Assembly: GCA_048013815.1 (NCBI GenBank)
Contig: CM106585.1
Span: 6,386,001-6,450,000, forward strand
Direction of reading: 5' to 3'
Length of the DNA: 64,000 nucleotides
Source: Setoptus koraiensis
Taxonomy: Eukaryota; Animalia; Arthropoda
The translations under genes and the position numbers were made by a program. Position 1 is the stretch's first letter. The number at the start of each line of letters is the position of its first letter. Below are positions 39,126 to 63,824 of the stretch, in pieces. Under the pieces are notes generated by a model, which was not told the origin of the DNA, did not search any database, and saw nothing but the letters and a program-made list of their open reading frames with translations.

Positions 39126-41943
39126 TCGCTGGCAGGGTCGGCTGGCGAGCGAGCGCCCTTTCGCGGTATAAATAGCCTAAGGTGAGGGGCAAACAAACAG
39201 AAAAAAAAGAGTGCGCGCCAACAACGAACGCGCCGCTCGCAATTCGCTGGCAAGGCCGTCGGACGAACGTCGTCCAGGCTGCGTATCATGCCGTGTCGTG
39301 CCCGCATATACAGACACTGTGTATAAAACAGTATATAATGTATACTATGAATGCTCCGTATACACGAACCTTGTAGACCATCATAGCACCATGATCGAGG
39401 CGCCACAAGCGGCGCTGCCAGCAACTGGAGTGAGCTAGCTGCCAGCAACTGGAGTGAGCTAGCTGCCAGCAAAGTTTGCCGGTTGCGGCCAGTAGCCGCT
39501 GGCGGCGCCTGCTCCGATGACGACGCCGGCCCATGCTATTGCGTCATGGGTCAAACATACAAGGACAAAAGGACAATGAACGCTTCTACGTCGCAAACAG
39601 CGACGAGCGACACCACTTGGCCATTCTCGTTGGCGGCCGCCAGCGAGCTCGCGGACGACTTGTGTCCGGCCGGCCGACGGCGCTGCTGGCCTGATTATCC
39701 AGCTGCTTTGCATTGTGAGCCGCCAACAAACGACTTTGCCCTGTGACGCAACCGACCAGAGTTATCGAGTTACCTGAGTCACTCACAACTCGTCAGACCG
39801 AGTGGCGGCGAGCGAGTGTCCGGCCACAGTGGCAGTTCATATGGCCGCGGCGGCCAGTGAGTCACGGGCAAGTTGCGAAGCGCAACTCGTTCGGCGCGGC
39901 CAGCGGCGACCGTCGGCAGCCGGTTTGCGCCCGCTTTCGGTGCGCTTTGTTTGCGCCACCGACGGCGCATTCCTGCCCGTCGCCGCCGCATACCATCGCA
40001 TATGTTCCAATGTCAACCGGACTGCCGCTCGCCGGCTTCACTGGCGCCCTGCTCACCTGGGCGAGAGTGAATCCTTTGCTGTTCCCTCGCTGTGCGCGCC
40101 AGTTGCCGCTGACCGGTTGCGGGCCGGCTGCTCGGCGTCGGCCCGCTCGCGCAACCATGCGGCAACCGTTGGCAAACAAACTGTCCGTGGCGCACGAGGG
40201 GGCCGCCACGAACAAACACAGTTAAAAAACAGAGCAATAAATAATAATTGTCGCTTATTTGTCGCTGCCCGTCCATTGTTATGTAACACTGTGCCAGCGT
40301 GCCACTGCGCGCCCCGGTGCGAAGCGAGCCAGGCATTAGTCGGTCGATTCGGCGAATCGATTGTCCAATCGAACCGATTGTCACTTAACGGCACTCGCCC
40401 GTCTGCCCTTTCGAGCCGGCCAACAGCCCCGAAGCGGTCATAATTCGACGAATTCAAAATGCAATTTTACAACAATTCGCCAGACTGCCGCCGCTGCCAC
40501 GATCGATGGGGCCCCGCCCGAGCAGCGTCACTCTTGTGTGCGCGTGTGCGTGTAACGGCACAATAAGCACGCTTCCACACCAGTCGACCGGCAACTGGCA
40601 ACCGGCAGCAACTCGCAACACGCGGCACGTAGTACGTGCACCCAGTGTGGAGTTCAGGCGGCGCGAGTTCAAGTTCAGCGCGACCCGCAGCGACGTGACT
40701 CCGCTAACCGTTAGCGGCCAACACCGGGCGCATCTGCTTTTTTACGCTTGGCATTGGCATTCTTCTGTCGGGCGTTTTGCAAGCGCTGGCAGCTTTTGCT
40801 AGCTTTTGCGGAGTTGCAAAACCGAACTGGTTGCAGCTCTAAAATCTAAAATCTGCGCAACAGCCGCAGCAACTTGTGGCCATCGGATTGAATTGTCACC
40901 GTTGTCGCCGGCGACCATTGCGTTCGCTGTCGGCCCGAGCCGGTCCGTTCGCGAACGCCGTCGCCCGGCCGGCCTCTGCCCGTTGCGCGTCTCGTTGCGA
41001 GCCAGCTCCGGGCTGTTCAACTGTTCACGGCGCAAGCCGACACACACTCGGCACGCTGGCCCCGGGCCGCTATGTGTTCGGAGCGGCCACATTGCGACCG
41101 CGGCCGGCATCAACCGGTACGACATGCCGGCACGACCGGCCGGCCGGCCGACTCACAACCGACCGTATCCGCCGGTGAGGGCACCAACTTGCCGCGGGCG
41201 CCCTCGCTCAGCTGGTTGGTGGTCAGCTGGTCGGTGGTCAGCTGTTGGCTGCCAGTGAGCTGTGGCGGCCGCTCGACTGGCGCTGACGGCCGGTCAGCTG
41301 ACGCGACAAGAGAGCAATTGGCCAGTGGCCGGAGGAAACAGCGGCCAGAGAAAACAAGCGAATAACAAGTTGCCCGAACAGTGCAACAGCGAATGTGGCG
41401 CCGACTCTATTAGGCGGACATCTCCACAGGTTAACGTTAGTCCAATCAGTGAGATCACTAACAAGAGTTGTAATTTTGCGAGCTGTCGATTGCGGCAAGT
41501 TGGCGGCAAGTTGCGCAGCCAGTTCAGACCGTTACTCATGGCGAGCACAGTTTTGTGTAGCGGTATGTGGTGAGGCGGCGCAGTGTGCGGCGCGGCCCAC
41601 AACATGAGCAACAATCATTTGTGCGCGAGTGTTTGTGGCCGGCACAAGTCAACTGTGGCCAGTGCCGAACCGGCTTCGATTGAACCCATTTGCTGCCGGT
41701 TTGATGCGGGCCCGCCTGTCGCCCGAACGGCGACCTTGACTGGCTCCGGTTGTGGCCAAGAGAGCAGTCAGCCCAGTGCAATTCCGGCCAGAAGAGGCCA
41801 GTTTATCCTTGGTCGGCACCTTTCAGCCGCCCACTCCACCTGGCGCACGGATGCACAATGACAGTGTGCCAGTGCTGCAAAAATGTAACAACCGCATCCT
41901 GTGCGCGCCTTGCACGCCGCGGGCGCGTTGTCGCGGTTTTGTC

Positions 41944-42039
41944 GGTCACTTTGGCCACTTTGGTCATTTTGGTCACTCGGTCATTTTGGTCACTCGGTCA
42001 TTTTGGTCACTTTGGTCATTCGGTCATTCATTTTGGCCA
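41944..42039 (+). repeat. Tandem array with nine GGTCA and two GGCCA cores at 8-9 bp spacing
   Basis: GGTCA at 41944, 41962, 41971, 41979, 41988, 41996, 42005, 42014 and 42022. Confidence 0.9.
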
Positions 42040-42689
42040 CATTATCATCATTAGCGTAAGCGTGCCCGCTTGACCGCCGGATTTGACATGCACGCGCACG
42101 GGTCAGCGCAGACAATTTTTGGCGCAAGTTGCGCCAACGAGCGCCCGGCGCAACTGTTGCGGTCGCCGGGCAACGGTGCCCGTTTGGTGCTGGCTGATCA
42201 CGGCGATCATCATCACAGATATCACTACTAGTGATACTGGGCAATACTGTGCCCGGCAACACCTACAAGTAGTATTTACGCTGTGCCAATTTGGCACAGC
42301 GAACAGCGTCGAGCTAGTTGGGGCAAGCGAGCATCAGGAGGCAGCGAGAGCGACGAACAGTCTAGAAGGCCGTCGTCTCACAAGCTCGCCTGTCGCACAG
42401 TTTGGCCCGGCCGAGAGAGGGCGCAGCCGGCAACTGGTCGCTTGTTAGCCAGGCTACGCTTGCCCGAATGCCAAGTAAGCCCAGTAACTAGACTGGTGTC
42501 ACTAACGAACAGCAGCACAAGTGAATAAACGCCGCCGACCATTGCGGCATGAGGAAGCAGCTTATCACTTTTGGCAAGCTAGCCGTTTGTTGTGTGGTGA
42601 TCGCTGTTGGGAGTTAATACACTCTCCCGATGACGATGCCGATGAGCGACGAAATGTTGTGTTGTTGTCGTTGTTGTTGCTGCTGTTGT

Positions 42690-42723
<34 letters not shown>

Positions 42724-43698
42724 GTCGTTGTTGTTGTTGTTGTGCGATAGTGTGATGTTGTTGTGCGATAGTGTGACGGAGCTAGTGAACTTGATTGAAC
42801 TCGATTGGACGGCATTCATGTGAAAATGGCAGCGCGTTTGTTTGCCGGCCGCTGGACAACAACCGATGACCGACTCACATGCCGAGCCGGCGAGCCGCCG
42901 ACACGCCAACAAGTGGCCAGCGATCGGCCACATGTCTCGGCACGCCAGCATGCAGCATAATGATGTTGCACGATGGGTCCCGCTGGCCAGACCAATATCA
43001 CTTGTGGCTAGTCGGTGCCGTTTGGTGCTGTATGGTCAACAATGCAATGTATGGATGATACAATGCAGTGTTGCGCCGATAGCATCGTATTATAGTCGCA
43101 ACAGCATCACGTAACTGTGCAGCGCTGTTGTTGGCGGCAGCGCCGTTGTCATCGGTGGTCGTATATCGACAGTGGCATCAGTTTATCTGTCATCGATCGT
43201 TTTGTGTCATCGATCGTGTTGTGTCAAGTGTTTCGATTCATTGTTCAGTCGATTTATTAGCACACACTCAATTGGCTGTAAGCTATATTCACAGTGAACG
43301 GTTCAACTGCAGCGCTTGTTGTTGGTCTGGCTGACGGTAGATTCTGGCAGCATTGCTGCCAGAATCGATGCTGCGCCCGTTGCAGCTCGGCCATTGGGGC
43401 GAAATCAGAAATAAGATAAAAACAAAACGTTGTCGCAATAGGTTCGCCTTGGCGTTCCCACTGACAACGACGACAGTTCGACGGCAACAGCTGACCGCCT
43501 GTTACTCACGATTATCCAATCCAACTCACGTGTGCCGGCGAGCTGCGCGGCCCCCACGCCGGCCAGGCGCCCCTCACCTGGCGAGCGGACGGCCGATGCC
43601 CGGTTGCGTCATGAATTGCAATTAGTGGCTCGTCGGGGATCACGAGGCCCCGCGGGGCACGCGATCAAGCGACCGTGTGTCTGGCGCGACTGTACTGA

Positions 43699-43758
43699 AC
43701 AGAGGCTGCGACAGAGGCTGCGACGGAGGCTGCGACAGAGGCTGCGACGGAGGCTGCA
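43699..43758. repeat. 5 x 12-bp tandem repeat ACRGAGGCTGCG
   Basis: Direct reading. Confidence 0.9.
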
Positions 43759-45387
43759 ACTGTGACTAAACGTCGGATAAGTCTGGCTCGGCGCTGCCAG
43801 CTGACTAGTTGGTCTAGTCAGTGTTAGTGTGAGTGTTGGAGCATTGGAGCGAGTTTGAACTTTACCAAAAGTGTACTTTTGCTCTCTGTTATGCGTCAGC
43901 GTATTGGCGTCGCTGGTCGCTTGCATCTATTCACATGTCTATCGCCGATGGCCGCTCCTATTAGCAGCCATCGGCGGCTATGGTCGTGCCCACGGTGTCT
44001 GCCAAGCGCATAGTTGTAGATATTTTGAATTTCTATATATATATATATTTATATAATGCACAATGGCCGCCGGTTTGTGTGTGTCTACGCAACGTACATA
44101 TTATATAATAATGTATTATAAAATTGTGTGGGGCACTTGGGCACCGGCTGCGCACCCAGCGGGTACGGAGCAGGTGCCCCGTGTGTGTGCTGCCGTGCGC
44201 CGTGCGCCGCGCCACCGGGGCCACGCATCACGGGCCTGGGGTTGCCCAAAATGGGTAGCGCTGGCACGGTTTGTAGGGAGCGTTTGTTATTTTTGTGCAC
44301 TGCAACAGCCAGCCAGTATAACAAGTATAGCCAAAAGTATGTGGCATAGTATTATATAAATGCGTTTTTTAAAGCCAAAAGCTGCTCGACTGCGCATCGG
44401 CATCCCATGCCATCAGTGCAGCGTAATGGATGTCGCTGTTGCCGGCGCTGTCGTTGTTGTTGGCGCTGTTGTTGTTGTTGTTGTTGCTGTCGCTGGAGCA
44501 CAAGTGATGCTGATGCTAGTTAGTTGGTCGGTCGGTCGGTCATTGGACTCGCTTCAAGTTGAAGGTCAGCTGAAGGTCGCACAACACGAACAACTTCCCT
44601 TTCTCGGCCACTTTCGGCTTCCACTCTCCATGCCACTAGCGACTGCCGCTGTTGTTGTGCTGCTGTTGTTGTGCTGCCACAACCGACGACTAGAGTCCAT
44701 CGTGGTTGTTGCACCACGGCCACGCATTACGCTGCTGCTGCTGCCGCCGCGATTGCACAAATGTTTCCATTTCCTATGCCCTCCCCCCGTGGCCGCACCA
44801 CCGCGCATATTGTGTGTGTTTGCCGCGGCGACTGCGATCAATCGCGCTGCCAATTGCTATCGACCGCTTTCCCCCTCGGTGCCCACTCTGCTGACACTGC
44901 TGCACAAACACACACACACACACACACACGCACACACACTGCTGAAAACACACACACGCACAAGCAGTTTGCTGGTCATCTGCTGCCGGAGGATGGTGCA
45001 TTGTTATGCAACTGGCCCGTCAGTGTGTTTGTGTGAGTTGAACCCAATGACGAAAACAAGTCGGCCACAGTTCAACATCCTTGCTCCGGCGGCGCCGCCG
45101 AGATGCGCAGCGTTGCAGCGAGCCGCACATCTTGGCGCCCGCGACGGCACACACACTTGGCGCGGCGCGCCACTGCGCGCCGTCGTGCAGGCGGCCGGCC
45201 GGCCGCCTGCACGACCGTCGGCCCCAAACACGCCAGCTGGCCAGCCTTATGGTGCACTGGTCAGCGGCGCGGCACAGCCGGGCCGCACGACGCACAGCGG
45301 CACAGCCGGGCGTTGCATGGTGCGCGCGTGGAGGTCATTGTCACGGTCGACCTTCAACTTTGGCTCGCTCTCTTCACTTTCTTCACA

Positions 45388-45418
<31 letters not shown>

Positions 45419-45506
45419 GGCTGCCACTACTACTGCGCGCCTCCTTTCCCCCGTTCGCCCTCGGCCGGCGGCGCACACCTCGGGCCAGTGTAGCGTTGCG
45501 CGCACC

Positions 45507-45513
45507 CACACAC

Positions 45514-45567
<54 letters not shown>
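45507..45567. repeat. Long (CA)n tract (one of many CA/GT tracts between 14 and 56 kb)
   Basis: Direct reading. Confidence 0.95.
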
Positions 45568-45569
<2 letters not shown>

Positions 45570-46187
45570 TGGTAATGCTGCTGGTGGCTAAAAGTTGACT
45601 ACTTTTAAACGTACTTGCACCTTTTACTGAAGCATCTAGATCAAAAACAACAACAACAGCCACAACTGGCTGCTGTTCGACACTCAGCCATCGAGCGTCA
45701 TTATTACATAATAATTCGTCTGAGCAACTAACACAATCGGCGATGATTCTCTTAGCGGCTCGCATGATTACGCAATCGACGACACAAGCAGCGACAAGGG
45801 CGACAAGAGCGACATTAGCGACAGCGGCCACCAATCGGGCCACACGACACCGAGACCCAGACAGAGCGGCTCGATAAGCGGGCCCAAGCGAGCAAAAGTG
45901 ACACAGTGCGAACAGAGACAACTGAGAACGAGCCGAACCAAGTGCAAGCGAGTCTCGCCAATCCGTCGAGCGCCAAACGTAGCAACCAAACGTAACAACC
46001 AGCCAGTGACTGAACAGCCAGTGACCGAACAGACAGTGACAAAACAGCGGCCGCACAATAGTTCAGACATTTACCAGACAGCAACCAGACAACACCGACG
46101 AAATAAATAACCGACGAAATAAATAACCGACGAACCAAATAAACGAGTTGACAGTTAAGTTAATCGCATAAACATCAAATTAAAACT

Positions 46188-49100
46188 ATGATGATCGACT
46201 TCGACGGCGACGCCATCCTGTGTCAGGTGTGCGGCGACAAGGCCAGCGGCTTCCACTACGGCGTGCATTCGTGCGAGGGCTGCAAGGGCTTCTTCCGGCG
46301 CTCCATTCAGCAAAAGATCCAATACAGACCGTGCAGCAAGAATCAGCAATGCAGCATATTGCGCATCAACAGAAATAGATGTCAGTACTGTCGCCTGAAG
46401 AAGTGCGTCGCCGTGGGAATGTCTCGCGACGGTAAGTTGTCTCCCTTTTCTCCCATTTTCCCCACTGCCCATTCACCATTTGCCCATTCGCCCGTTTTCC
46501 CCTTTGCGCACCCATTTGCGTCCTCGAGGTTTTGACCGAGATTTTGCAGCATTTTGCAGGATTTTGCAGGATTTTGCAGGATTTTGCAGGATTTTGCAGG
46601 ATTTTGCGACTTTGCGATTTTGTGCGCCAACTTGGCGCTACATTTTGATATCGCCGCCATTTTGCGCCCACAGCGCAGGCCAGCCCGCGCCCAGAGTGGC
46701 CCGAAGTGGCCCAATCGAACCAAACAGCCACCTGTTGCCGGGGCCGGCCGATGCGTGGCGACACCAGTGGCAGCGTGGGGCCAGCGGTCAAGCGACAAGC
46801 GTGCCGCACGCACCAACAAACAGCTGTTTGTTTGCGCCAATCGGCCGCCATGCGGCGCGATACGGCGCAGATTGGCGAGCCACAGTTGCCAGTGTGAGCT
46901 AGTGTGCCATCACGGTGGCTTGCCAGAGATGGCTGCAGGATGAGGCTTAATGAGTTTGCTTTGCCACTAAACTGCCTGCTGATGTGACGTCGTGTTGTTG
47001 CTGATGCCATCAATGCCAATCATTACATCATCTTTGTTTGCACATTTGCACTTTTGACATTGCACTCTGGTCGCCAGAGCGACAGGCATAGAGAGACAGA
47101 CAGACAGTCTGTGAGAGCGAGAGAGAGAGTTAATCGCTAGCCACTTTTTTCCAAACACCCCCTCATGTGCATTATATGACGCAAATAATCAATGTCGTTT
47201 CATTTCGTTGTCCTTCGCCTTGCTGCGCCACCGTCAATTGAACCATACATCACACAACAACTTGACAACAACGCTCAATATCGCTCACTGTCGGCTAACA
47301 TAGCGGTGAGATTTGGTCGTGTTCCGAAGCGCGAGAAAGCTAAAATATTGGCCGCCATGCAAAAGGTGAACGCAAACCATCATGACATGGATATCAGATT
47401 GGACATAGAGGACGAATTGAAACTAATCAACACGGTCGTGAGTGCTCATAAAGACACATGTGATTATACCAAAGAGCGCATTATGCCTCTGATTGAAAGG
47501 GCGCGCAACAATCCCATTTACGCGCAGTGCCCGCCGCAAGCTGTAAGTTTTGCAACCAAACCCCGACGAATTGCCCAAATTCGCCCACAAATCTGATCGA
47601 ATTGCCCAGATTTGCCAATTGGCAACTGGGCCAATTTGCATATCGTTATAATAAATATTTTACAATATTATAATATTTGCAATATGCTAATTATCATGCT
47701 ATCAATGTATATACATATTGCAGAGTTTTCCGCTGAACCCGATCAACCCACTGGCGGCAGCCCTGTCTTACCCTAAACCGGCGCACACCATCACAGTTAG
47801 CTCGGCCGGCGATTACATAACCGGCACCGGGCATGAAACAAGGAGAGAAACAACAATTACACAAGACGACAATGACCACAGTGAGGCCACCCCCGCCTCG
47901 GGCAACCATTTAAGCAATAGTAAGGCCGACACGCAACGGAGCGTCGAGGACCAGGAGGTCAAGATCAAGGCCGAACAGGTTGAGCAAGGGGTTGATTCGC
48001 ATCCGAGCAGCACTATTACGGACAAAAACTGCACCACTGACGACACCACCGCCACCGCAACCACCACCACCACCGCTACAACCACCGCGAATGTGGCCCC
48101 AGCGAAACGAGAGGGCGCCACAGGGCCACAACAGCCAGACACAGACACAAAAGGGCCCACCACTGATACCGACGATTGTTTGCCAAACAAACAAGCGGAC
48201 AATAACAACCAGCAGGACGACAGTGATCATGTGATGCAAACAGACCCAGTGCAATATCATAGCCAATCGTCGCTTGCAGCGAACACGAATTTGGTTAATT
48301 TGGCCAATTCGGGCCGGCCGAGCGAGCCGGAGGCTTGTCGAGACCATGAGCACGATGCTCGTTTGACGGGGGAGCCCACGAGCCAGCAAACAGCGACAAT
48401 TAGCGAACAAAAGCAGGCAGAACGCTTCTCGCCGGCAATAGATGGCGTCATTGAGTTTGCCAAGCGACTGCCCGGCTTTCAGTTGTTGTCACAGGACGAC
48501 CAGGTGACGCTGCTGAAGGCAAGCGTGTTCGAGGTGCTTCTAGTCAGACTGTCGTGCATGTTCGACGCCAAGACCCAATCGCTGGTGTGTCTGAATGGAC
48601 TGTTGTTGAAAAGAGACTCCATTATTGGTCAACAGACGGAGACACTGGCCAGACAGCAGCAACACAGCGGCAACTCGCCCGCAACAACAGCAAGCACCAC
48701 GACGAGCGGCCCCGATGGCGGGCAACTGTCGCTGGTTGCGTTCAATCATCAGCAGCAGCCAAACAACAACAACAACTACGCCAGTAATCAGTTTTCCAGC
48801 TCGGGCGCGGGATTTGGCGGCAGCGGCGGCGGCGGCGGCGCCACGGGCTGCCAGCAATCAAATAATGCCATATTTCTCATGGACTCCATGTTTGACTTCG
48901 CCGAGCGGCTTAACGAGGCCGAGCTGAGCGACCAGGAGCTGGCGCTGTTTTGCGCCAGCGTCATTATGGCCACCGGTGAGTAGAAAGACAAACAGCATTA
49001 GCCAGATATAACTCTCTAAATCATCATGTAAGACGACCTAGAGCACAAGCAACTGAGCTGACAACTAATGGCCCTCTATGGCCCGCGCGCGCAACTCGCA

Positions 49101-52100
49101 AGCGGCTTATTTATTTTTGGCGAGCGCCGCTGCAGCGCCTAGCCGGTGCGCCATTGTTTGCCGTTGGATGGCAGCCGTCGGTATTGCGCGCCAGATGTAG
49201 CAGCGAGATAGCAGCACTTGTGTGCCTGTCTAGACACTTCATATTGTTTTTAGACATGTTTTCAAGGTCGATCCTTTAGCACCCATGAGCAAGATGATGA
49301 TGATGATGAGCACAACAACTCAATGGCAATTGCACAGCCGCAACACACACACACACACATCTAACTAGCTCGCTTGGTGGCAGCAAGCGAGCTAGTCAGA
49401 TGTAGCTAGTGAGTGCGCGCGCGCGCGCCACTTAGGGGCGACCTTGAATATCGACACACTCGCTTGCCAGCCAGTCAGTCAGCCAGCTAGCTTGCCAAAC
49501 GCAGTGTGCGTGCGCGTCGGTGTGTGTGTGTGTGTGTGCGAGTGCGGATTTGCGCTACTTCTACGACAGGTAGCAGGCTGATATGAAATCCTTTTGGCCC
49601 TGAGAGCGAGCGCTCGAGGCTCTGAAATTGGAGCACGGCGGCGCTCGTCGGCGGGCTAGCCGGCGATTGGGGGCCGCCGCCAATGGCGCCTTGGCAGCGC
49701 TGGCGAGCTGACGGGCGCCGTTGTGAGAGCGCGCACTAGCGCCATGGTCAAGGTCGCGCCAGTGGCTCACAGTTGCACAGTTATGTGGAATTGTTGTTGT
49801 TGCCGTTGACGTTTGTGCCGCCGCTGGGGCCGTTGTTGCCGTCGTTGCTGTTGCCGTCGCTGTTGTTGTTGCCGCTGCTGTTGCTACTGGCACAGTGTAG
49901 TGGTGCGCAAAAGTACCTAAGATTACGCTACTTGGTGGCCTTGAAAACAACAACAACAACTGCTGCCGCTGCTGTCTACGTATGCACACACACACACGCA
50001 CACGCACGCACACACAAACGCAATGTGCGGATCAGGCGACGTGTAATAGCGCGAAGGTCTCGCTATTACTCGCAAAAACTGCGCGCTGGCTCGCTCGCTT
50101 GCCACAACTGGCTCGCTTGCCACAACTGGCTCGCTTGCCACAACTGGCTCGCTTGCCACAACTGGCTCGCTTGGCGCAGCTAGCTTGCCGCAACTAGCTC
50201 GCCAGTGGCTGGTGAAATTGTTTGTGTGTGTGTGTGCGCGCGCAAATGTCGCTGCTTTTAGTTTTGCGAGCGCGTGCAATAATCGACAAGACGACTCTTG
50301 CGACACGCAGATAATCGCATATACGCTGCGCTTGCCACACTGTCTGCCTGTCCCGGCGCGCACATATGCGATCGCAACAGCAGCGGCAACAACAACGACA
50401 GCGGCAACAACAACAACAACGACGACGACGACGACGACGACGACAACAAGCTGCAGCAGCGCTCGTGATTTAAATATCGTGTGAGTGCGCGCCTTTCAAG
50501 GTCGAACTCTATATATAACTAGCCAGAGTGTGTAATATCCATTGGCTGGTTGTATTAGTTCGATCGCGAGGGGGGGGCGATGGGGGCACCGACGGTGGGC
50601 AACAATGACAAGCGGCAGCCAGACCAGTCCAGACGGCGCGCGGACGGGCGCGCGGCCGCTCGCTCCGGCCCGTTGTGGCGCGTTCTGGCTCGCCCAGGCT
50701 CACTCTAGCAAGACAGAACAAACAAGAGCGGCGCATAGGTCGGCGCGTCTGGCGCGCCGCGCGCGTCACACTCGTACGCGAATAAGCGTGGTATTATGTA
50801 ACCGCCACTCGTGTCCCCCCGTCCGCGCAATTCGCAGCGCCAATACATGATGACATTACATGATACTATCAATGCGCTGCGGGCCCCAGCGCGCGAGCCC
50901 GGGAGCGCCGCCATTCATTAGCAGCGGCGGCTCGGCCAATAGTGGCTGGCTGGATGTTGGCCAGTCAAGTACTAGACAGACGGGCACCAGAGTGCCCTTT
51001 AGCGCGTCGCTACCCCGTGCATCGGGTGACATTTAGGCGGCTGCTCGGCGGTGCGGTGCACAGTTTGCGCACTTTACTCGACCAGGCCGCCGCTTTGTTG
51101 CAATCCGCTGCCAGGCAGCTCGTCGTCTCGTGCTGCAAAACCAATAAATTGGCTAGAGCGAGAGTATCAGTGGCAGTGGCGCGGCGCGCACCATAGATAG
51201 ATAATGATCATCGTTACCTGGCGCGCGGTGACCTTGACTTTATCAAGACACTTTAAGCTGCCACAGGCAACTTGAGCAGCGCCGCCGACTGCGCCAACGA
51301 GCGCCGGCTCGACAACAGCAACGACAACAACAACAGCAACGACAACAACAACAGCGACAGCAGCAACAACAGCGACAACAGCAGCGACGGCAGCGACAAC
51401 AAAGCCAGCGACAACGATAGCAACAACGACGACAACACGGGCGACAACAGCGACATTAGCAACGACAGCCGCGGCAAGGGCAACGCGCGGCGAGCGGCGC
51501 ACTTGTCGCGAGCACTGTGCTTCGCACACAAATGCGCTCGCGACAAGTGCGCCGCCTGGGCGCGGGCACGCGCCCACGGGCGCCAGTCTGCCCAGGCAGC
51601 GCGCCGTCGAACGCCCGGGGCATTGTTGCCCGGCAGCCGTCGGCTGGCCGCGCGCGCCAAGCGAGTCGCTGCGCAGCTCGCCTGTGCGGGCGAAACGGGG
51701 CACGCTTGCCCGAATGGCCCCCTTCTCCGCGAGCTCGTTTACCCGTGGCCCGCTTGCCCGCGCTCGCTCGCCCGCAGCTGTTCGTGCGGCTCGCGCGCAG
51801 AGCACAGTTGCACGGAAAGCGCTGTAAGTGAGTTAGCGCTGCTGCAGTCTTAGCGCGCCCTCGACGCCAGCGCCACCAGCTCCATTTTCAAGGCCGATTT
51901 GCAACAGGGGGGGGGGGCGCACTCGCTCTCTGCTAATGTCAGGCGGGCTTGCTGGCGCTGTTGCGGGAACGCCAGCGCCGTTGCCGCTGTCGTCATCGCG
52001 CCCCATTTTCAAGGCCAACGCGTGCCGTTTTCGCAGTGCGTGCACTCGCTTGCCGTAGAGGCTTGCGCTCGCTTGCCCGTCTGTCTGGTTGGCTGCTCCA

Positions 52101-54567
52101 TTGTGCCCTGTCGGTCGGATGATTGCACAGCGACAGTGCGGCATTGCGCGCACTCGCTCGGCGCGGCGGGTCCCGCGGGCTCCGCACGCACCGGAGCGCC
52201 ATAATAGGGGCCAAAAGTGGCCAAAATTGCTGCTGCTGCTGCTCCTTCGAGATGCCGAACACCAGCCCGAAGGAGCAGGACTTTTTGCTGGCGCGCTCTC
52301 GTGGCGCTGCTGGGGGCGCCCCAGTGTGCACCACCGACAGATATACTGGGCCTCATTTCTTGTCCATCATTTGAGTGTGTGTGTGTGTGTGTGTGTGCAT
52401 GTGTGGGCGCAATTGGGTTGGCGCCGGTGCACCAGTACCCCTGCACAAACGCTCACCTTTTGATGAGTCCCCGGGGCTTCGCGAAGCATGCTGATCGGGC
52501 CCCAACAGAGTGCATGCACACTGGAGCGGGCCCAATTCGGCCGCCTTGTTATCGATATACATCGATAATGTTGTGTATTGTATCGGAAACCAATTATGGG
52601 CCCCCTTTCGCTTTCATCCCTGGCTGGCGTGTCTTGCCGTCCGGAGACGCTCGCAAAAGGGCAATATAGACTGGTCGCAGTGCGGCACATGACGCAAACA
52701 CGTCGTTGTTGCCTTTCTGTCTCTGTCTCTGTCTATTTATGTCCCTCGGCTTGTGGCAACTATGACTCTGGCAGCGTGACGAGCGCAAAAATTGTTGTCA
52801 GTGCTGATTGTGAGCCAATGACGAGCTCGGCGAGCCCGCTGCCAGCCAGCCAGCCAGCCAACGAGTCGACGAGTGTTTGCGCAGACGGGGCACATCGTTT
52901 GCACTGGTTTTAATCTGCCATTTACGAGCATCGGCAATATCAGCGCGATTTAACGACAACAATATAACAACAACCGGGCCCGCCAACTAGACGCGCCAGC
53001 TCATTAGCATAACTGCCGGCGAGCCGAGTGACGTCTTATTGCTACTTTTGAAGCGTCAATTGCCTCTCAATCCTTTGCAGCCTCTCAATCCTTTGCAGCC
53101 CGTCTGGCCGTAGCGTGCGGCTGTCGTGACACCCGATATGATGGCAAGATCGGTGGCGGCTGCGGTGGTGACATTGAACACTGTCAGTGAGTGTCGTGAT
53201 TTTGCCATTATGATAGCGCCGTGTCTGGCATTATTTTGCTGCCGCTGCTGCTGCTGTATCCATTGCCAATACATCCCATCGCAGCGCGCGTATGACAGGA
53301 ACAAGGAAATGGCCACGCTCTGAGCACTTGTTGTGTTCCAGTGTGACGTGCACTTGTTGGCCGGGCCGCCCGCCTTCAACCACACACTGGCACTGCCAGG
53401 TTGGCAAGACTGCGTGGGCGTGCAGCGCGGTCACGCCTCCGGCGACGGGCAACAACGAGTAGTGGTTCACCTTGGCCTTGACAACTACAAGCTAACTAGT
53501 ACGCCGGTAGTTAGTCATGACTAAACAACGACAACAGCGACGACGACAACAACGACAACAGCAACGACAACGGCAGCAGCGACGACAACAACAACGACAA
53601 CAGCAACAGCGACAGAGACAAATCATATCGGCATGAATGGCGCGAGCACGTTGCGCGTTCTCTCACAGCGCACACTGTCATTGTTGCTGGCTCCCTCGAG
53701 CTCCATTGATGCGCCCAATTAAGCGTTGTTGTTGTTGTGGTTGTCGTCGACGTGGCTGCCGCGATCCTTTCATTACATTGTTGTGCCGCTCGTTTCCGAT
53801 TGTTATTGATGATGCCGATTATCACTTGCACTGAAATATCCATCCGTTGCCAGTGATAACTAATTGCACACACACACACACACTAAAATAATGAGCTGCC
53901 TGTGTGTCGCTTGAGCAAGTGCCAACAAACATGACAATTGCTCGTAGCAGCGTGATAACGTTGCCAGTTTGCCTTTCGTCTCGCTTGCGGCTAACCTTGG
54001 CGTCATCGTTTTGTGCGTGCCAAAACGTTTTTAAAATAAATGTTGCCGCGAAACAACGGGCCGCGTTTTGTCTGTCTCAAAACTGTTCGCCAGACAATAC
54101 GGCAGCAACAACAGCAACGACAACAGCAGCAACAACGGCAACAACGACAACAATGTTGTGGTGTGATCTACAAACTCGCGATACAACTATCCACTCCAAA
54201 CACACTGTTGGAATACGATTCGCATTACACCAAGTGTGTTTGCAGTTTTCAAGACAAGCGCGTTTGGGGCGCTTTGTTGCTGTGCGCTGGCAACTATGAA
54301 CCGCCAACGAGTCAGTCAGCCAGCAGACGAGCCAACGAAACGAATGGAGGCCAACCACTCTTGGCCGGGCGAACGCCTTCAATCGAGACCAACACGCCAG
54401 CGGAGGTGGTTCACCTGTTGACTGGCTTGTGTTCCGTTTCTGGCTGGCTGCTTTGGTGGCGAGCAGCAACAGCGAGCAGTCGATCAAGACGGAACGAGCC
54501 GACAATCCTTTTCGGTCTCGATTGGTCCATTCTTGTCTGGCCTATCGCTCGGTCAATCGGCCGGTCG

Positions 54568-54598
<31 letters not shown>

Positions 54599-57500
54599 CA
54601 ACACAGCGCTCAGGCAATAGTCTGTTGAAAAGAATGACCCAATTAAAGGACACGCACTCTCTCACAGCCAGCCCGCCAGTTAGTGAGACAAAAAACAATC
54701 TTCCTTGATTGAGCGAGCAAAACAGGTAAAGTGGCTCACACACACACACACACACACGACCGAGAGGAAACGAGTGCCATCAGTGATGGCTGAACTGGCT
54801 CAGTGATTGTTCTCTCGCCAATAGCAAGTCGCCATACGCTAGAGATTAGAATGAGAATAATAACACAGATCTACAGACAGTGAGAGGGCAAGATTGATCA
54901 GGAATCGATTCTTGCGCAGCCCGCCTGACAAGAGATACATGAGCGAGAGAGAGAGAGCGACCACAGGTAACCTTAAAGAGCAATGACTCTTGCGTGTTCA
55001 ATGGCCAAAAAGTGGCTCACCACTGTTGTTATGAAAAAGCGAGAGAGAAAGAAAAACTTGATCAACAACGACAACCTGCGCTGCTGCTGTTGGCCTTAGA
55101 TGGGTGATGACCTCCACTCACAACAATGACTTATCTATTTGGGCGACTCCGCTCGCCTTGGCACGCCTACGGACAGCAAGCAAGGTGCCAAGCTCAAGGT
55201 TGGCCGGCTTGCCAACTCGCTCGGTTTGTTGTCGGTATGCATATGAGCCGGCCGTGAATGAAATAGAAAAGTTTGAATGTATGCAAAATAAAATACAGTG
55301 CAAGATACATTTACATACATACCTAGACCGTATGCTGTAAATTGACTTTTGGATGTTGTGCATTATCTGTGCCACTACAACTACTGCTGCCGCCACCACT
55401 ACTACTGGTGATGCCAGTGCTAGCACAAAAGTCGATTTAGTTTGCTCTGACTGTGTGTGTGTGTGTGTGTGTGCTAATTCTACTTGAACTGGAAGTGGTA
55501 GTCAATGTCAACGACCGTGAACCGTTAGCCTTGGCTTCTTTGCTCGCTCATGGAAGCTGAGTGTGTGTGTGTGTGTGTTCGTGAAGTGATAATAAGCCCG
55601 TTCAATGTCGAAACTTCTTGACTGCCAGACAACAGGCTGGCAGTATCAATGTGCCAATTTCAATTTGATAGATCGAGCACAGTTTGTTGCCCGCTCGCAA
55701 GCGGTGGCCCACTGAGGCACCGTCGCTGTTCAATATGGCATAGATCCTGATCTTGCCACTGCAGCAGCGCCGACAACAACAGCAACAACGACAACAGCGA
55801 CAGCGACAACAGCGGCAGCGACAACGGCGACAGCGACAACGGCGACAGCGACAACGGCGACAACAGGTACGCGAGCGTTTCCGCAGAGGTCGCGCACGAG
55901 CGATCCCTGGGCGGCTCGGCGTCGATATCTGGGCGACATTGTTCACTGTTTGCACACTTGTCTCGCCGCTGTCATTGTTGTGTCGCAGTTTGCAAGAGTG
56001 TGTGCGATACTGATAAACTGATAGCGAGCCGAGCTAGACATTTAATTGTGACTGGCAGCCTGATCAAACATCGTGCATCGTCGGGGCTGCGTCGCAAATT
56101 GGCACGTTGCTCGGTTGCGTCGAGCCAAAGTGACAATTTACTTTGCGCTCGCTGGCGCTCCTCCGCCAACAACTGATAATGAATTCACAATATACGGCCG
56201 GGCGACACAACCAGAGTTTGCGGCTCTCGCCAGGCTCTGGTTGTGGCCAGACTCTGGTTGTGGCCAGACTCTGGTTGTAGCCAGACTCTGGTTGTAGCCA
56301 GACTCTGGTTGTGGGCAGGCGGAGAGAGTGAGCCAGCGAGACGGGCTGGCAAGGCCGGCATTAAGCAGCCAGCGCTGACAACATTTGAAGTTTGCTGGCG
56401 CAACAAAACGCTGCTTTGTGCGCTGTGCGAGTTGTGCTGCGCGCAGCGCTCAGTGCGCAGGGCGATTCGCGCTCTCTAGCGCTCGGCACTGCAGAGCGTG
56501 TACTACAGACTCTGTAGTGCAGAGTGTGTAACAACAACAACAACTGCCAGCACAGAGTGTGTAGAGTTGTACAGTTGGCGAGACAGCGCCAGCGAGCGAG
56601 CGAAACGGGTTTGCCCGAGCAGCTTGTGAGCGCAGCGAGTCGGCGGCCGTCGCCAGTGTGGCTGCACACAGCACACAGCTCACAGCGCAGCACACAGCGC
56701 GGCGGACGGCACAGCAGACAGCGCGGCAGACAGCGCGGCGGACGGCACAGCAGACAGCGCGGCAGACAGCGCGGCGCAACGCAACGCGACCCGACACAAC
56801 AGTTCGTCGTTTGTCAGTTCGATTTCAGGAGCGCTCTGGCTCGCACGCATACGACACACAAGCCAAGACAACAAGTGAGCATTGTCGAACTACACGCCAG
56901 CGACGAGACAAAGACGAGCCAACGAATTATTCGACGACGCATTCGACGATACAGTCGACGACGCATTCGACAGCACAGGCAATATAGGCGCGCACACACA
57001 GTTTGTGAGAGAGCCGCAAAAAGCAAAAAGTTCGATTTTGTGGTTGCCAGTTTGTTAGAGTTTGTTAGAGTTTGTTAGAGTTTGATTAGAGTTTGCGCTT
57101 GTGCAACGACACTTTGCAGGCCAGACAAGCGTGATATCGGAGTGATTGCGAGCAGTGCGAGCTTCTAGAAGAAAATGAACAATTATTTGCATTATTTATT
57201 GTGAGAGCAACACACGCGAATTAATTAGACTCGGCGACGACAATATCAATTTGCATGATTAGCGCCACCAGTAAACATTGAGTTATCATTGAGTGTTATC
57301 ATCGGCGCGCGACAACAGTATCCAGTTTCATCGGCGATTGTCAGATCTCAGCTTGTGCAATTGCAGTATTCAGTGCTGCAGCAGCAATATCACCATTCAT
57401 CACATTATATCTTTAGTAACGCTCGTCTCAATTTTATGTTTGCCTCGCCCAACCCGCAACAACTGACGCAACCAACAACCAACGAAATTAAAAATCAAAA

Positions 57501-60500
57501 ATCAACAACCAACAACCAACGATAAACAACCAACGATAAACAACCAACGATAACCAATCAACAGACCGGCCCGGCCTGAGGAACGTGGAGCTGGTGCACA
57601 AGATCAGCGACAAACTGAACGACGTGCTCGAGAGGACCGTGCAACGCACCCACCCGCACCATTCGAATTTGTTCGGCGAGCTGCAGAAGAAAATCACCGA
57701 CCTGCGCACCCTGAACACGCTGCACTCGGACAGGCTGCTGGACACGTTCAACTCGACCGCGGCCCAGCACCCGTCGCTGCACCTGGCGCGCAGCGCACCC
57801 AGCGCCGACGACGACAAACTAGTGCAGCACTACGGCTCGTGGCCCTCGCTCGACCAGTCCCACCAGCAGCAGCAGCAGCATCAGCACCATCAACAGAATC
57901 AGCAACAGCAGCAAAAGACGCGCGGACCAGGCGCACAGCAACTGGCCAACATGATGATTGAGTCGCTGTACGAGCGTCAACCACCAACCACCACAACCAC
58001 CAGCAACACCATGACCACAAACAACAACAACACCAATATCAGCATAAGCATTCAAGTCAACAACAACAACAGCACCAACAACAACCAATCGCGCAACCCG
58101 GACGCCAAAATCGATGCCTACGATCGGCTCATGTCTCCAACCTCGACCACCAACTACAATTATCCTCCAATCGGCGGCCACTATCAGCAGCACAACAAGC
58201 ACAACAACCAGCCCACTCATCACCAGCTCCAGCAGCACAACAACCAGACCATTCAAATGCTTCCGGTCAACCTGACCGCCGTCTCGCCAACGTCTCACCA
58301 CCAGCATCACGGCAACGATATGTGTTGCGCAGACATGCAGTGCAAATCAACACCGCAAAACGTGTCCACAACCACCACCGCCAACAACAACAGCAACAAC
58401 AACAGCAACAGCGGCAACGCAACCGTCAATTCGACAACCAGCAGCACGTCGTCGTCGGCGGCCGCCGCCAGCATCATCGAGCAGTATCTGAGAAATCAAT
58501 CCGCTGTGGCGGAGGCCGCGGCAGCAGCGGCCGCCGGTCTGTCCGTCAGACACCAGCCGTCGGCTCAACAGCAGCAGCAGCAGCAGAAATCAGCCAGCAA
58601 CAGTGGCGAACAGCAGCACTACACGACACTCACCAATCTGCTGCACCACAAGGATCACCAGCATCATCATCATCCCTATCAAAGTCATAATATGAAGAAT
58701 CGCATTGACTCGCCAACAGATTCGGGCATTGAATCGGGCAAAGAAAACGGAGGCATGCGCTCCATAACGCCCAACGGGTCGTCGATTTGCTCAAGTCCGT
58801 CTCGTTCGATGATGGGCGATCATCACTTCAACCATCATCACCATCATCACTTTGGCAACAATCTTCACCTATCCTCGTCATCCTTGGCGAGCTACCAGCA
58901 GCAACAGCAGCACCATTCGAGCGCCATTCAGCGTCATCATCAGCACACAATGATTGAATCATTCAATAATCATCATCATCTCACATCGTCATCGTGCGGC
59001 GAGCAAGCCTCATCAATTAAAGTTGTCACCACCAATTCGTCATCGTCGTCGGCGTCATCGCAACAACAAACCAACGCCAATCACAATTCAGTTCAATTGG
59101 GTCTGGCCAATCAAGCGCACACAAACAACGCCAGCGAGCTAATTACAACTAGCGCCAAGACCAACAACAACTACACAATGACACCCACTACCACCATCGA
59201 CGACATGCCCATGCTCAAGCGAGCCCTGCAGGCGCCCCCTCTAATCAACACCAACATGCTCATGGATGAGGCCTACAGGCACCATAAGAAATTTAGAGCT
59301 GCCCAGAGGAAGGAATCTGTGGATCATCAAATAGGTTCAACAACAGGCAGCACAACTGGCACAAACGGTAATAACAGCGCAACAACAAACAATATTAATT
59401 TATTGGCCTCTAACAACAATCACACATTAATTATGCCAAACGATGACAATATTACAAACACTCAACTCCATATTGAATCACCGCCTATGTCTAAGATATT
59501 ACATAAGCATTTAACCAGTGGTCATAATAATAACAATCAAACAAATTTGGATAAATCATGCAATGGTGACCAGCATCAATTGGCTTCTACTCATTCAACG
59601 TTGCTTAAGACATTGGGTCAGCCATCTAGATATTTGAACGAGCAACAAATTAAACGTACGGATCTCATACATAATCTTATAATGCGCTCAGAACAATTGC
59701 CACCAAACAATGCAACTACTACCACTACCACCACCACTAGTACCACTAGTCCTGTTGGCGGTAATGTAGAACCCATAACAACGGACGACACCAATGGCAA
59801 CAGCAACAAAAATCAATCAATTGTTGTTAATTATGACTCTGATTTACACAGGATTCTCACATCTAGAGCACCAATAAATTCAGCAGTGTCTCAACATCAA
59901 TCAATCTCAATAACTGCTGGCATTGGTGCTAGCCAACATCATCATCATCATCAAGTGACCACCAACGGTAAACTACGTCAACAGCAGCATCATCATCTTC
60001 ATCACAACATAAATAATAATAATAATAATAATGGCCACTATTCGACACTGTCGGCCAACAACCATTCGCAATACACTAATCAGTCACACAATGTTTCGCA
60101 CAGACGCTCGTCATCTTCTAATTCCTCGTTGTCGCCATCGCCAACATCGTCAATCAGTCCCGATTGTGGATTGCCTGTTAGTCATCATCTCTGTGGTCGA
60201 CATTTTAATAATATCAACATCAATAATCATTTCTCCAATAATCATATCAGTCAGCATCATTTGAAACAACCGACATCAGCCATGCTATTGGCCCGATCAC
60301 CTGTGTCTCCATTAGGTTCATGCGGAACTCATAGTAGTAGCGGAATATCATCCTCACTATCATCATCTACATCGTCATCGCCTGAATCACCTCGTCTTAT
60401 TACAACAATGGGCGGAAGTCATCAGCATTTAATTAGTGAAACAACTAACTCATCGTCTAATAATACAGTTGGCCTAAATAGTATGAGTAAATTGAGCTTG

Positions 60501-60710
60501 AACGGAGGAAGCGGACTGCAAAATTTAGATGACACTTTGATGGCAGCCAAGCTTCAACTTATGTCGAGTAGAACCATGATTTCGCCTAATATTACTAATA
60601 ACATGATTAAAGGTACCATTGCCATGATCGATGAACAGGATCATCTTCCATCGATGATGGAGGCCTCTAGCCCAGCCTTGGTCCAACCACTTAATCTATC
60701 AAAGAAGTGA
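46188..60710 (+). CDS. Eip75B: Ecdysone-induced nuclear receptor E75 (NR1D/Rev-erb group), 4 coding exons (46188-46431, 47304-47542, 47724-48975, 57565-60710), ~1626 aa
   Basis: [41 protein letters not shown]; [12 protein letters not shown]; [35 protein letters not shown] and DLRTLNTLH; F-domain [10 protein letters not shown] and [12 protein letters not shown]; terminal QPLNLSKK. All three introns (872, 181, 8589 nt) are GT-AG and frame-consistent. Confidence 0.96.
46541..46607. repeat. ~6.7 x 10-bp tandem repeat ATTTTGCAGG in E75 intron 1
   Basis: Direct reading. Confidence 0.95.
49262..53481. promoter_or_regulatory. Homotypic cluster of nine FTZ-F1/NR5A sites (TCAAGGYCR) in E75 intron 3; putative enhancer
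   Basis: Exact matches at 49262(+), 49439(-), 49748(+), 49936(-), 50496(+), 51229(-), 51888(+), 52009(+) and 53473(-). Confidence 0.7.
50086..50173. repeat. ~4.5 x 18-bp tandem repeat CTGGCTCGCTTGCCACAA
   Basis: Direct reading. Confidence 0.9.
54635..54645 (-). promoter_or_regulatory. Perfect RORE/RevRE TAATTGGGTCA (HR3/E75 monomer site)
   Basis: Exact WAWNTRGGTCA match in E75 intron 3. Confidence 0.45.
56230..56314. repeat. 5 x 17-bp tandem repeat CCAGACTCTGGTTGTRG
   Basis: Direct reading. Confidence 0.95.
57512..57553. repeat. 3 x 14-bp repeat ACAACCAACGATAA just upstream of the E75 exon 4 acceptor
   Basis: Direct reading. Confidence 0.9.
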
Positions 60711-63233: not shown

Positions 63234-63824
63234 ATGCCTCGTGTTCCAACAGTACACAGTAAGACCTATGTTACCCCTAGACGTCCTTATGAAAAAGAAC
63301 GTCTCGATCAGGAATTGAAACTAATTGGTCAGTTCGGACTTCGTAACAAGAGAGAAGTATGGAGAGTCAAATACACTCTGGCAAAGATCCGTAAGGCTGC
63401 TCGTGAACTTCTTACATTGGAAGAGAAGGATACCAGACGTTTGTTTCAAGGTAACGCATTGTTGCGTCGTCTTGTCCGAATTGGTGTGTTAGACGAGAGC
63501 AGGATGAAATTGGATTACGTCCTTGGTCTGCGAATTGAGGACTTTCTAGAGCGCCGTCTACAAACTCAAGTGTTCAAACATGGTCTAGCTAAGAGTATAC
63601 ATCATGCCCGTGTTCTTATCAGGCAGAGACACATTCGCGTTAGGAAACAAGTTGTTAACGTACCATCGTTTGTTGTTCGATTAGATTCTGAGAAGCACAT
63701 AGACTTCTCATTGAACTCACCATTCGGTGGTGGTCGCCAGGGACGTGTAAAGAGGAAGAATTTACGTAAGGCGGCAAGTGGCGAGGGTGCCGGTGGGGAT
63801 AATGCTGATGATGAAGAAGAGTAA
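63234..63824 (+). CDS. RpS9: 40S ribosomal protein S9 (uS4), 196 aa, intronless CDS
   Basis: [44 protein letters not shown] and [18 protein letters not shown]. Confidence 0.98.

Follow-up and report, generated by a model that had tools for sequence, protein, structure and literature searches.

The loop of E75, HR3 and FTZ-F1 times arthropod moults, and to our knowledge little is established on its cis-regulatory wiring outside Drosophila, where the FTZ-F1 sites are few and scattered. In the mite DNA studied here, a stretch of 64 kb that we call the window, nine exact copies of the nuclear receptor word TCAAGGYCR lie within 4,220 bases of an intron of E75 (49262-53481), and the question is what such a group of sites is for. 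As judged from its sequence, the cluster is probably a receptor docking platform.

The cluster and its surroundings

The original prediction was right about the nine sites, their strands and their variants (Table 1), and its count of only three other matches in the window (14189 on the minus strand, 41731, and 47965, which is on the plus strand in coding sequence) also proved correct. The nine are distributed over both strands (five on the plus, four on the minus strand) at irregular spacings of 121-1464 bases, and they vary only at base 7 (T in five, C in four) and base 9 (G in five, A in four), i.e. at the degenerate positions of the consensus YCAAGGYCR. The 5' flanks are T-rich, with T in 6-7 of the nine sites at positions -3 to -1 in local DNA that has about 20% T.

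Table 1. Coordinates of the E75 exons, the intron and the TCAAGGYCR sites in the window
Feature	Position	Strand	Remarks
E75 DNA-binding-domain (DBD) exon	46188..46420	+	both zinc fingers; 3' boundary approximate
E75 exon, first part of ligand-binding domain (LBD)	47724..48976	+	long low-complexity inserts; contains the coding-sequence match 47965
E75 intron, 8,588 nt	48977..57564	+	GTGAGT...ACAG; phase 1, Asp codon of ..MATG|DRPGLR
Last E75 exon	57565..60710	+	rest of LBD and ~1,000-residue low-complexity tail to the stop
Nine-site TCAAGGYCR cluster	49262..53481	.	~1 site/470 bases; 59.5% G+C
Site 1, TCAAGGTCG	49262..49270	+	5' flank gttt
Site 2, TCAAGGTCG	49439..49447	-	
Site 3, TCAAGGTCG	49748..49756	+	
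Site 4, TCAAGGCCA	49936..49944	-	C at base 7, NR5A-favoured form
Site 5, TCAAGGTCG	50496..50504	+	
Site 6, TCAAGGTCA	51229..51237	-	only cluster site doubling as a perfect ERR element
Site 7, TCAAGGCCG	51888..51896	+	possible old 121-nt tandem duplicate of site 8
Site 8, TCAAGGCCA	52009..52017	+	
Site 9, TCAAGGCCA	53473..53481	-	AGGTGA directly after; only DR0-like arrangement
Isolated TCAAGGTCG	41731..41739	-	upstream of the E75 DBD exon

The cluster occupies the first ~4.5 kb of the intron, between the two halves of the LBD coding sequence, and the DBD exon lies upstream of it at a distance of over 2.8 kb. Apart from E75, the genes closest to it are RpS9 and ferritin, both of them housekeeping genes and at least about 10 kb distant. 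The DNA from 48977 to 53600 has 58.7% G+C and a CpG observed/expected ratio of 1.14, i.e. no CpG depletion, and the 4.2 kb of the cluster also have a concentration of a second word, CTCGCTTGCC, restricted to the plus strand. Contigs from four public DNA runs cover the stretch (no run on record as RNA contains it), X5 and X6 in parts only, while X1 and X2 cover it well and show no differences outside repeat tracts. Since the runs agree with the window sequence, the cluster is not an assembly artefact.

Enrichment of the exact sites

The comparison with a local Markov background, which the original prediction had proposed as a check, came out in its favour. Models trained on the 4,220-base cluster stretch itself predict 0.137, 0.107, 0.085, 0.161 and 0.470 sites for orders 0-4, respectively (at order 5 the sites themselves cause over-fitting), as opposed to the nine observed (Poisson P <= 2e-9), so that exact TCAAGGYCR is about 65-fold above chance. 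Over the whole window 12 matches stand against 1.5 expected from dinucleotide shuffles, and 0 of 100 shuffles reached 12. The same is seen when the TCAAGG hexamers are followed into their next three bases: YCR comes next in 9/9 hexamers in 49000-53600 and in 3/27 elsewhere (Fisher P = 2.3e-6), and with p(YCR) = 0.074 nine successive extensions have a probability of 0.074^9 = 7e-11. Equal enrichment in GC-rich DNA would speak against a specific role, but the adjoining GC-rich non-coding DNA of E75 lacks it, with one site in 38000-48976 and none in 53482-57564. The Markov models, the hexamer extensions and this adjoining DNA rule out a compositional artefact. Nor was the motif cherry-picked, since the word comes first in an unbiased k-mer scan: with tandem repeats masked, TCAAGGT, TCAAGGTC and TCAAGGTCG are the top over-represented 7-, 8- and 9-mers of the whole intron. 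As regards equally degenerate patterns that outnumber TCAAGGYCR, the best 60 of 71 are all microsatellite-type or tandem-repeat words.

The excess is confined to perfect copies. The chance model gives about 23 one-mismatch variants per perfect site, and such variants are at the neutral level (3 observed vs 3.2 expected). Enriched exact sites together with neutral one-mismatch variants are the pattern predicted by selection on the full 9-mer. Natural enhancers, however, usually combine strong and weak sites, and an enrichment limited to exact sites is unusual for an enhancer, which is a point against the FTZ-F1 enhancer reading.

Origin and independence of the sites

The oriented flanks of the sites are unrelated to each other, with the exception of sites 7 and 8. 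CCATTTT precedes both 51888 and 52009, which the original prediction had correctly noted as the only shared flank, and the respective 121-nt segments are about 54% identical, with several co-linear blocks. From this resemblance the two sites may be one old tandem duplication, in which case there would be 8 independent origins, not 9. The intron is rich in microsatellites and short tandem arrays (67 TRF rows), and a repeat search and TRF over the sites gave just microsatellite-type families, none of them covering a site. A repeat or transposon origin was rejected on this ground and because of the unrelated flanks, the possible 121-nt duplication of sites 7 and 8 aside.

The strand orientation is near-alternating (7 of 8 neighbours, P = 0.035, post hoc), and a TIR-like pairing of the alternating sites was dismissed, as the inverted pairs have unrelated sequences on their inner and on their outer sides. 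An RNA-level motif such as a splicing signal is unlikely with 4 of the 9 sites antisense. A nested gene or known RNA was rejected, in that the seven longest intronic ORFs have no Pfam match and Rfam gives just far sub-threshold matches across the intron.

Candidate receptors

In specificity FTZ-F1 overlaps with ERR on TCAAGGTCA and with HR4/GCNF-type receptors on extended half-sites. HR4 is a GCNF-type receptor that helps to shut off the early ecdysone genes in Drosophila, where DHR4 represses early genes, and Bombyx GRF/HR4 binds TCAAGGTCA as a monomer. The assignment of YCAAGGYCR as the FTZ-F1/SF-1 consensus holds: it is the canonical FTZ-F1/NR5A consensus (PMC7239656), and the nine sites match this 9-base extended half-site exactly. 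In their two orientations and the lack of an RGKYCR partner at any constant spacing up to 25 bases away they resemble monomer sites, as is expected of NR5A. ERR and NR5A have many common targets; Esrrb/ERR has TCAAGGTCA as its canonical element, and in mouse ChIP-seq a C at base 7 shifts the preference from Esrrb to Nr5a2 (PMC8451941). The ERR response element (TNAAGGTCA) combines an AGGTCA core with A at base 9, and only the site at 51229 fits. With four sites carrying C at base 7 and a single TCAAGGTCA, NR5A (FTZ-F1) is therefore a better fit than ERR. A GCNF/HR4-type DR0 (AGGTCAAGGTCA) was not found in the window, which has one DR0-like TCAAGGCCAAGGTGA at 53473. In Aculops lycopersici, the one eriophyoid genome so analysed, FTZ-F1 is kept, as are ERR and an HR4 homologue without predicted ligand-binding domain, while HR39 is reported absent (PMC7738191), and this weakens HR39 as an alternative binder, which had been suggested.

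It had also been argued that ecdysone response elements (EcREs) matter less here, as no perfect IR1 was seen. The EcR/USP IR1 consensus RGKTCANTGAMCY is indeed missing from the cluster and the intron, but the argument is not safe: one full RGKTCANTGAMCY match does occur in the window, at 61534, some 820 bases past the stop codon of E75.

Comparison with related mites

The comparison of E75 introns with other mites, also proposed originally, supports the age of the intron but not that of the cluster. The intron is ancestral, its position and phase being common to Fragariocoptes setiger and two metagenomic mites (L022 and L023). It has been lost in most related mites, and most of the 16 E75 loci from a metagenome scan are without it. 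In two relatives the orthologous intron measures 205 nt and 1,461 nt, vs 8,588 nt here, i.e. it has expanded in this lineage. Counts of TCAAGGYCR in the orthologous introns are 0 in F. setiger, 0 in L022 and 1 in L023; the 7.8-kb E75 contig of F. setiger has no site at all, with 0-3 per 3-20 kb at the E75 loci of metagenomic mites. As the cluster is missing from all the mite relatives compared, none of which is close, it is lineage-specific and without conservation support.

Two E75 protein searches gave no close relative, the best being 62-78% identical in conserved segments. The closest named relatives by RpS9 are eriophyoids (94-95%). In a synteny search from RpS9, E75 was not upstream of that gene in L002 or L007, and the remaining RpS9 contigs end within ~700 bases upstream of it. 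The L018/L020 pair, at ~89-93% identity, is too close to inform on conservation. The host genome is about 50 Mb, and the authors of the Aculops lycopersici genome point out that retained eriophyoid introns are possibly rich in cis-regulatory sequence (PMC7738191).

Discussion

We consider it somewhat better than an even bet that the locus is a homotypic cluster of monomeric NR5A-type elements, with FTZ-F1 as the likeliest occupant, and a putative enhancer of E75. A homotypic cluster is defined by several sites of a single factor, beyond chance, in a span of some kb, and there are nine here where 0.09-0.47 are expected. The FTZ-F1 enhancer reading is plausible and partly supported: the consensus, the monomer-type sites, the location in an E75 intron and the Drosophila precedent speak for it, while conservation and the side claim on EcREs do not, and we infer from the sequence the FTZ-F1 binding, the enhancer role, E75 as target and the sign of the effect. 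A single receptor molecule would occupy each 9-base site, with AGGYCR read by the zinc-finger core and the 5' TCA by the C-terminal extension (FTZ-F1 box). With eight or nine such high-affinity sites in 4.2 kb, occupancy would climb steeply to a high level as FTZ-F1 goes up during the part of each moult cycle in which hormone is low, and the platform would then control E75 transcription or the competence of E75 for the ecdysteroid pulse that comes next. In this manner the E75 / HR3 / FTZ-F1 loop would be closed directly at E75 DNA. FTZ-F1 gives early genes their competence, and by analogy the mite cluster would fit this logic.

The same platform could be real and have another monomer-type occupant, ERR (NR3B) or HR4, bringing metabolic input or post-peak repression of E75. 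We think this unlikely. Site 6 is a perfect ERR element, the AGGTGA after site 9 is DR0-like, both receptors are kept in A. lycopersici (HR4 without predicted LBD, PMC7738191), and ERR targets overlap those of NR5A (PMC8451941); but the AGGTCA core with A at base 9 is found in just one of the nine sites, the C at base 7 of four sites disfavours Esrrb relative to Nr5a2 (PMC8451941), the window is without AGGTCAAGGTCA-type DR0 and the 5' flanks are T-rich, not AGG. It is quite unlikely, in our view, that an FTZ-F1-like factor binds here in the service of something other than the E75 promoter, be it an intronic promoter (for a truncated E75 isoform or a non-coding RNA), a neighbouring gene, or a sink that buffers FTZ-F1. 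The position between LBD exons, far from any known E75 promoter, is a point against the E75-enhancer reading, and the GC-rich DNA without CpG depletion, the location past the DBD exon within the coding part of E75 and the strand-restricted CTCGCTTGCC, which hints at a further, directional function, would all suit such a role; dense exact clusters for one factor are known from ZNF410 at CHD4 (bioRxiv 10.1101/2024.02.24.581901). However, the intron has no conserved ORF, Pfam domain or Rfam RNA, a transcript started in it would encode only the last LBD helices and the low-complexity tail, the genes next to it are distant housekeeping genes, and Ftz-f1 peaks in Drosophila Eip75B are also intronic.

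Very unlikely, finally, is that the cluster has no regulatory function and is a by-product of turnover in an expanding, repeat-rich intron, through eroded local duplications or biased mutation/gene conversion. The many microsatellites and short tandem arrays, the resemblance of sites 7 and 8 to an old duplication, the lack of the cluster in relatives and the near-alternating strands, a possible hint of structured origin, are consistent with such a history. Yet seven sites have no detectable flank similarity, and erosion that erased the flanks should have damaged the 9-mers too, whereas one-mismatch copies are not in excess. Moreover, what sets the four variants apart is confined to the two positions at which a known protein-binding consensus is itself degenerate, and the adjoining E75 DNA, which is GC-rich and repeat-rich, is without the word.

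It is useful to compare the candidate FTZ-F1 platform with known systems. The FTZ-F1 elements of Drosophila and Bombyx (ftz zebra element, Edg84A, Adh) have the same 9-base extended half-site with the same degenerate positions, and their recognition is likewise monomer-type and orientation-independent. Classical FTZ-F1 targets carry a site or two in the 500 bp before the start site (PMC7239656), as opposed to nine exact ones across a 4.2-kb intron stretch in the mite. Another parallel is Drosophila Eip75B, i.e. the same gene and the same factor family, where CUT&RUN of Ftz-f1 in follicle cells gives motif-bearing peaks in introns (including 'intron 5 of 7') and near promoters. There, single motifs are scattered over a gene of ~100 kb, whereas the mite has a compact block of candidate sites at ~65 times chance density. 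The multi-EcRE enhancers of Drosophila E75, which work over a distance, likewise have many copies of one nuclear-receptor element distributed among introns (Bernardo et al. 2014, PMC4176353); they consist of EcR/USP palindromes, while the mite cluster is without an IR1-type element. ZNF410 sites at CHD4 similarly bring many exact one-factor motifs to one locus, although the factor family is different (bioRxiv 10.1101/2024.02.24.581901). Much as in that case, the ancestral intron might have been kept and enlarged 6- to 40-fold for a dedicated, all-exact FTZ-F1 platform, with E75 as the dominant direct target or sink and the moult timer hard-wired at one locus, a speculation to which we give only a small chance of being right.

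If the cluster turns out to be non-functional, it will be a warning that a 65-fold enrichment of exact matches to a known motif is insufficient to call an enhancer. A compact block of eight or nine exact sites in E75 would be an unusually clean substrate on which to test direct FTZ-F1 input, in a lineage that purges introns and has lost several nuclear receptors, and it could show whether streamlined genomes retain long introns on account of the regulatory sequence in them.

Statistical support for the site cluster

A pattern search of the window recovered 12 matches to TCAAGGYCR, nine of them within 49262-53481, and reproduced the coordinates, strands and variants of the original prediction together with the three further matches that it had named. 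Dinucleotide-shuffled versions of the window average 1.5 sites, and all 100 of them stay below 12. Since the cluster stretch is GC-rich (59.5% G+C), Markov models of orders 0-4 were trained on local DNA, i.e. on the cluster stretch, the whole intron and the 20-kb GC-rich domain. Expected numbers are 0.09-0.47 in 4,220 bases (Poisson P <= 2e-9) and 0.17-0.54 in the 8.6-kb intron. The expectation of 0.13 put forward earlier agrees with our order-0 value of 0.137, and the comparison with a local Markov background that had been proposed with it leaves nine sites against 0.09-0.47.

The hexamer-extension and neighbour-word tests are independent of the choice of pattern. YCR follows TCAAGG in 9 of 9 hexamers inside the cluster stretch versus 3 of 27 outside (Fisher P = 2.3e-6), the chance of this extension at local composition being 0.074 per hexamer, and words one mismatch away from TCAAGGYCR are at expectation (3 observed versus 3.2 expected; chance ratio of one-mismatch to exact words, 23 to 1). 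The enrichment is therefore confined to the exact 9-mer. An unbiased k-mer scan of the intron, carried out after masking 36 tandem-repeat intervals (67 TRF rows merged), ranks TCAAGGT (k = 7), TCAAGGTC (k = 8) and TCAAGGTCG (k = 9) first. There are 71 equally degenerate 9-mer patterns with at least nine matches, and the best 60 of these 71 are all microsatellite-type or tandem-repeat words. Equal enrichment of the 9-mer in all GC-rich introns had been named as an argument against the enhancer reading; the other GC-rich non-coding DNA of E75 is without enrichment, with a single non-coding site in 38000-48976 and no site in 53482-57564, the rest of the intron 3' of the cluster.

The stretch is held by six public sequencing runs under two organism labels, none of the six recorded as RNA. 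The two well-covered runs have no differences from it outside repeat tracts, so the cluster sequence is real. The observation of the site cluster is solid.

Features of the E75 locus and of orthologous introns. Slashes mark exon-intron boundaries; cluster sites are given by their starts.
Feature	Position	Strand	Remark
TCAAGGYCR, cluster	49262, 49748, 50496, 51888, 52009	+
TCAAGGYCR, cluster	49439, 49936, 51229, 53473	-
TCAAGGYCR, outside cluster	14189, 41731, 47965		pattern search of window
E75 exon with both zinc fingers	from 46188	+
E75 hinge exon	ends 47542	+
E75 exon, first part of ligand-binding domain	47724-48976	+	end reads ..IMATG/gtgagt
Last E75 exon	57565 to stop at 60710	+	preceded by ..caacag; reads (D)..
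CTCGCTTGCC copies	49459, 50094, 50112, 50130, 50148, 52045, 52068	+	span 49459-52077
Minisatellite, 3' half of intron	56229-56318		17-nt unit, 5.3 copies, 94% match
Minisatellite, 3' half of intron	56674-56776		36-nt unit, 2.9 copies, 94% match
Intron at same codon and phase, mite locus L022			205 nt
Intron at same codon and phase, mite locus L023			1,461 nt
Intron at same codon and phase, F. setiger contig L025			donor alone located, ..VMATG/gtaagt

Layout of the sites

Five sites lie on the plus and four on the minus strand, irregularly spaced (177, 309, 188, 560, 733, 659, 121 and 1464 bases between neighbours). Aligned on the motif strand, the 30-base flanks of the sites have nothing in common beyond an excess of T at the 5' edge (positions -3 to -1, with T at 6-7 of the nine sites), and no direct or inverted repeat family covers any site, all families being microsatellite-like. 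The CCATTTT noticed earlier next to sites 51888 and 52009 is indeed common to both, and an alignment of their 121-nt segments gives about 54% identity and co-linear blocks. These two sites may represent one old tandem duplication, which would leave eight independent origins. Neither a second half-site at a fixed distance from the nine sites nor a DR0 was found, the nearest thing to the latter being TCAAGGCCAAGGTGA at 53473. CpG is not depleted (observed/expected 1.14), therefore the CpG-containing site variant is not disfavoured. The E75 intron contains eight or nine exact NR5A sites of monomer type that are independent of one another.

Other repeated elements are present in the same DNA. Of the nine copies of the word CTCGCTTGCC in the window, the 4.2 kb of the cluster contains seven, and four of these belong to a tandem array of 4.5 perfect 18-nt units (50093-50173); the word may be recognized by another factor or act as a strand-specific signal. 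Mid-cluster, two 18-nt arms (51497-51514 and 51536-51553) form a perfect inverted repeat around a 21-nt loop, and Rfam gave only mir-like matches far below threshold for it on both strands.

The E75 intron and its evolution

E75 lies on the plus strand, and its exon ends define the host intron as 48977-57564 (8,588 nt, phase 1); its earlier label, intron 3, holds if one counts from the DBD exon. The ligand-binding-domain exon has long low-complexity inserts, the C-terminal tail, roughly 1,000 residues long, is enriched in N, Q, H, S and T, and the hinge junction reads ..QA/SFPLNP. Downstream of E75, the intronless RpS9 (63234-63824) shares 95% identity with its counterpart in Fragariocoptes setiger and 94% with the one in Aceria tosichella, two eriophyoid mites, as against 83-92% for other mites; the genome is about 50 Mb in two sequence pieces. 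A ferritin gene follows RpS9 on the opposite strand both here and in several related mite contigs (L001, L003, L007, L026, L027), an order that represents conserved microsynteny, and E75 is absent upstream of RpS9 in contigs L002 and L007.

Protein searches queried with the conserved ligand-binding-domain parts found no close E75 relative, and a metagenome scan gave 16 E75 loci with 42-78% identity in the best segment. Most of these E75 loci (L010-L021, L024) lack the intron and encode the ligand-binding domain without a break between its halves, and three metagenomic mite loci (L010, L015, L016) have no intron at all from the DBD to the LBD. Three other loci have an intron that matches in codon and phase (see table), hence the intron is ancestral. 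On this comparison it has been lost repeatedly in mites and greatly expanded in S. koraiensis; at ..G/DRPGLR it offers a clean case of repeated loss within one gene.

Receptors that may occupy the sites

The original reading of the word as an FTZ-F1 consensus agrees with YCAAGGYCR, the canonical Ftz-f1 motif, for which Drosophila CUT&RUN gives CAAGGTCR and DBTCAAGGTCA de novo (PMC7239656), and the nine sites vary only at its two degenerate positions. In mouse cells base 7 separates receptor families sharing TCAAGGNCA, T favouring Esrrb and C favouring Nr5a2 (PMC8451941). Four of the nine sites have C at base 7 and four further ones end in G, versus the A of the ERR element. HR39 had also been suggested as a binder, but it is absent from the eriophyoid Aculops lycopersici, which has retained FTZ-F1 and ERR as well as an HR4 homologue (PMC7738191). 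Together, the site variants and this receptor set make FTZ-F1 the best candidate. ERR, likewise suggested earlier, does have one perfect element, at 51229, but the other eight sites deviate from it; ERR and HR4 are, on these criteria, weaker candidates, and we regard it as unlikely that either is the actual occupant.

The original prediction had also suggested that ecdysone-type elements are possibly less important here. There is indeed no IR1 element within the cluster, but a full match to the EcR/USP IR1 consensus RGKTCANTGAMCY, the only one in the window (roughly 0.1 expected), is found as GGGTCAGTGAACT at 61534-61546, between E75 (about 820 bases downstream of its stop) and RpS9; the window gives no basis for weighing EcR input against FTZ-F1 input. 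Other receptor-type words occur upstream of E75: TCAAGTTCA (3 window copies versus 0.7 expected) is present twice upstream of the DBD exon, at 40669-40677 and, as part of the DR4-like AGTTCAATCAAGTTCA, at 42786-42794, and about ten GGTCA/GGCCA half-sites in a single orientation, 8-11 bases apart, lie at 41944-42039.

Possible role of the cluster

The sites might instead act on another target, drive a promoter inside the intron or work as a sink, which we find rather improbable; the intron contains no Pfam-domain ORF and no Rfam family near threshold. That the cluster is without function seems to us quite improbable. The comparison with E75 introns of other mites that had been proposed earlier was negative in the loci compared, none closely related: the 7.8-kb F. 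setiger contig has 0 sites, other relatives have 0-3 per 3-20 kb with no cluster in any, and the orthologous intron of L023 contains one site. Conservation thus lends no support, the compared species being too distant for a fair test.

Direct action of FTZ-F1 on E75 from within an intron has precedent: the Drosophila Ftz-f1 CUT&RUN tables contain peaks with the motif at Eip75B, among them one in 'intron 5 of 7' and others 2-3 kb away from two Eip75B promoters, and further peaks at Eip74EF, and Drosophila E75 introns carry many EcR elements looping to E75 promoters (PMC4176353). Compared with Eip75B, the mite cluster is unusual in site density and exactness. An FTZ-F1 enhancer is a reasonable interpretation, and we lean towards an intronic FTZ-F1 platform that probably acts on E75 transcription. 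Following the ecdysteroid peak, newly present FTZ-F1 would bind the sites as monomers, their large number would make occupancy strong and steep, and the platform would then either activate E75 or make it competent for the next pulse. In Drosophila, E75 restrains HR3-driven ftz-f1 expression in an established loop, and it is this loop that the action of FTZ-F1 on E75 would close.
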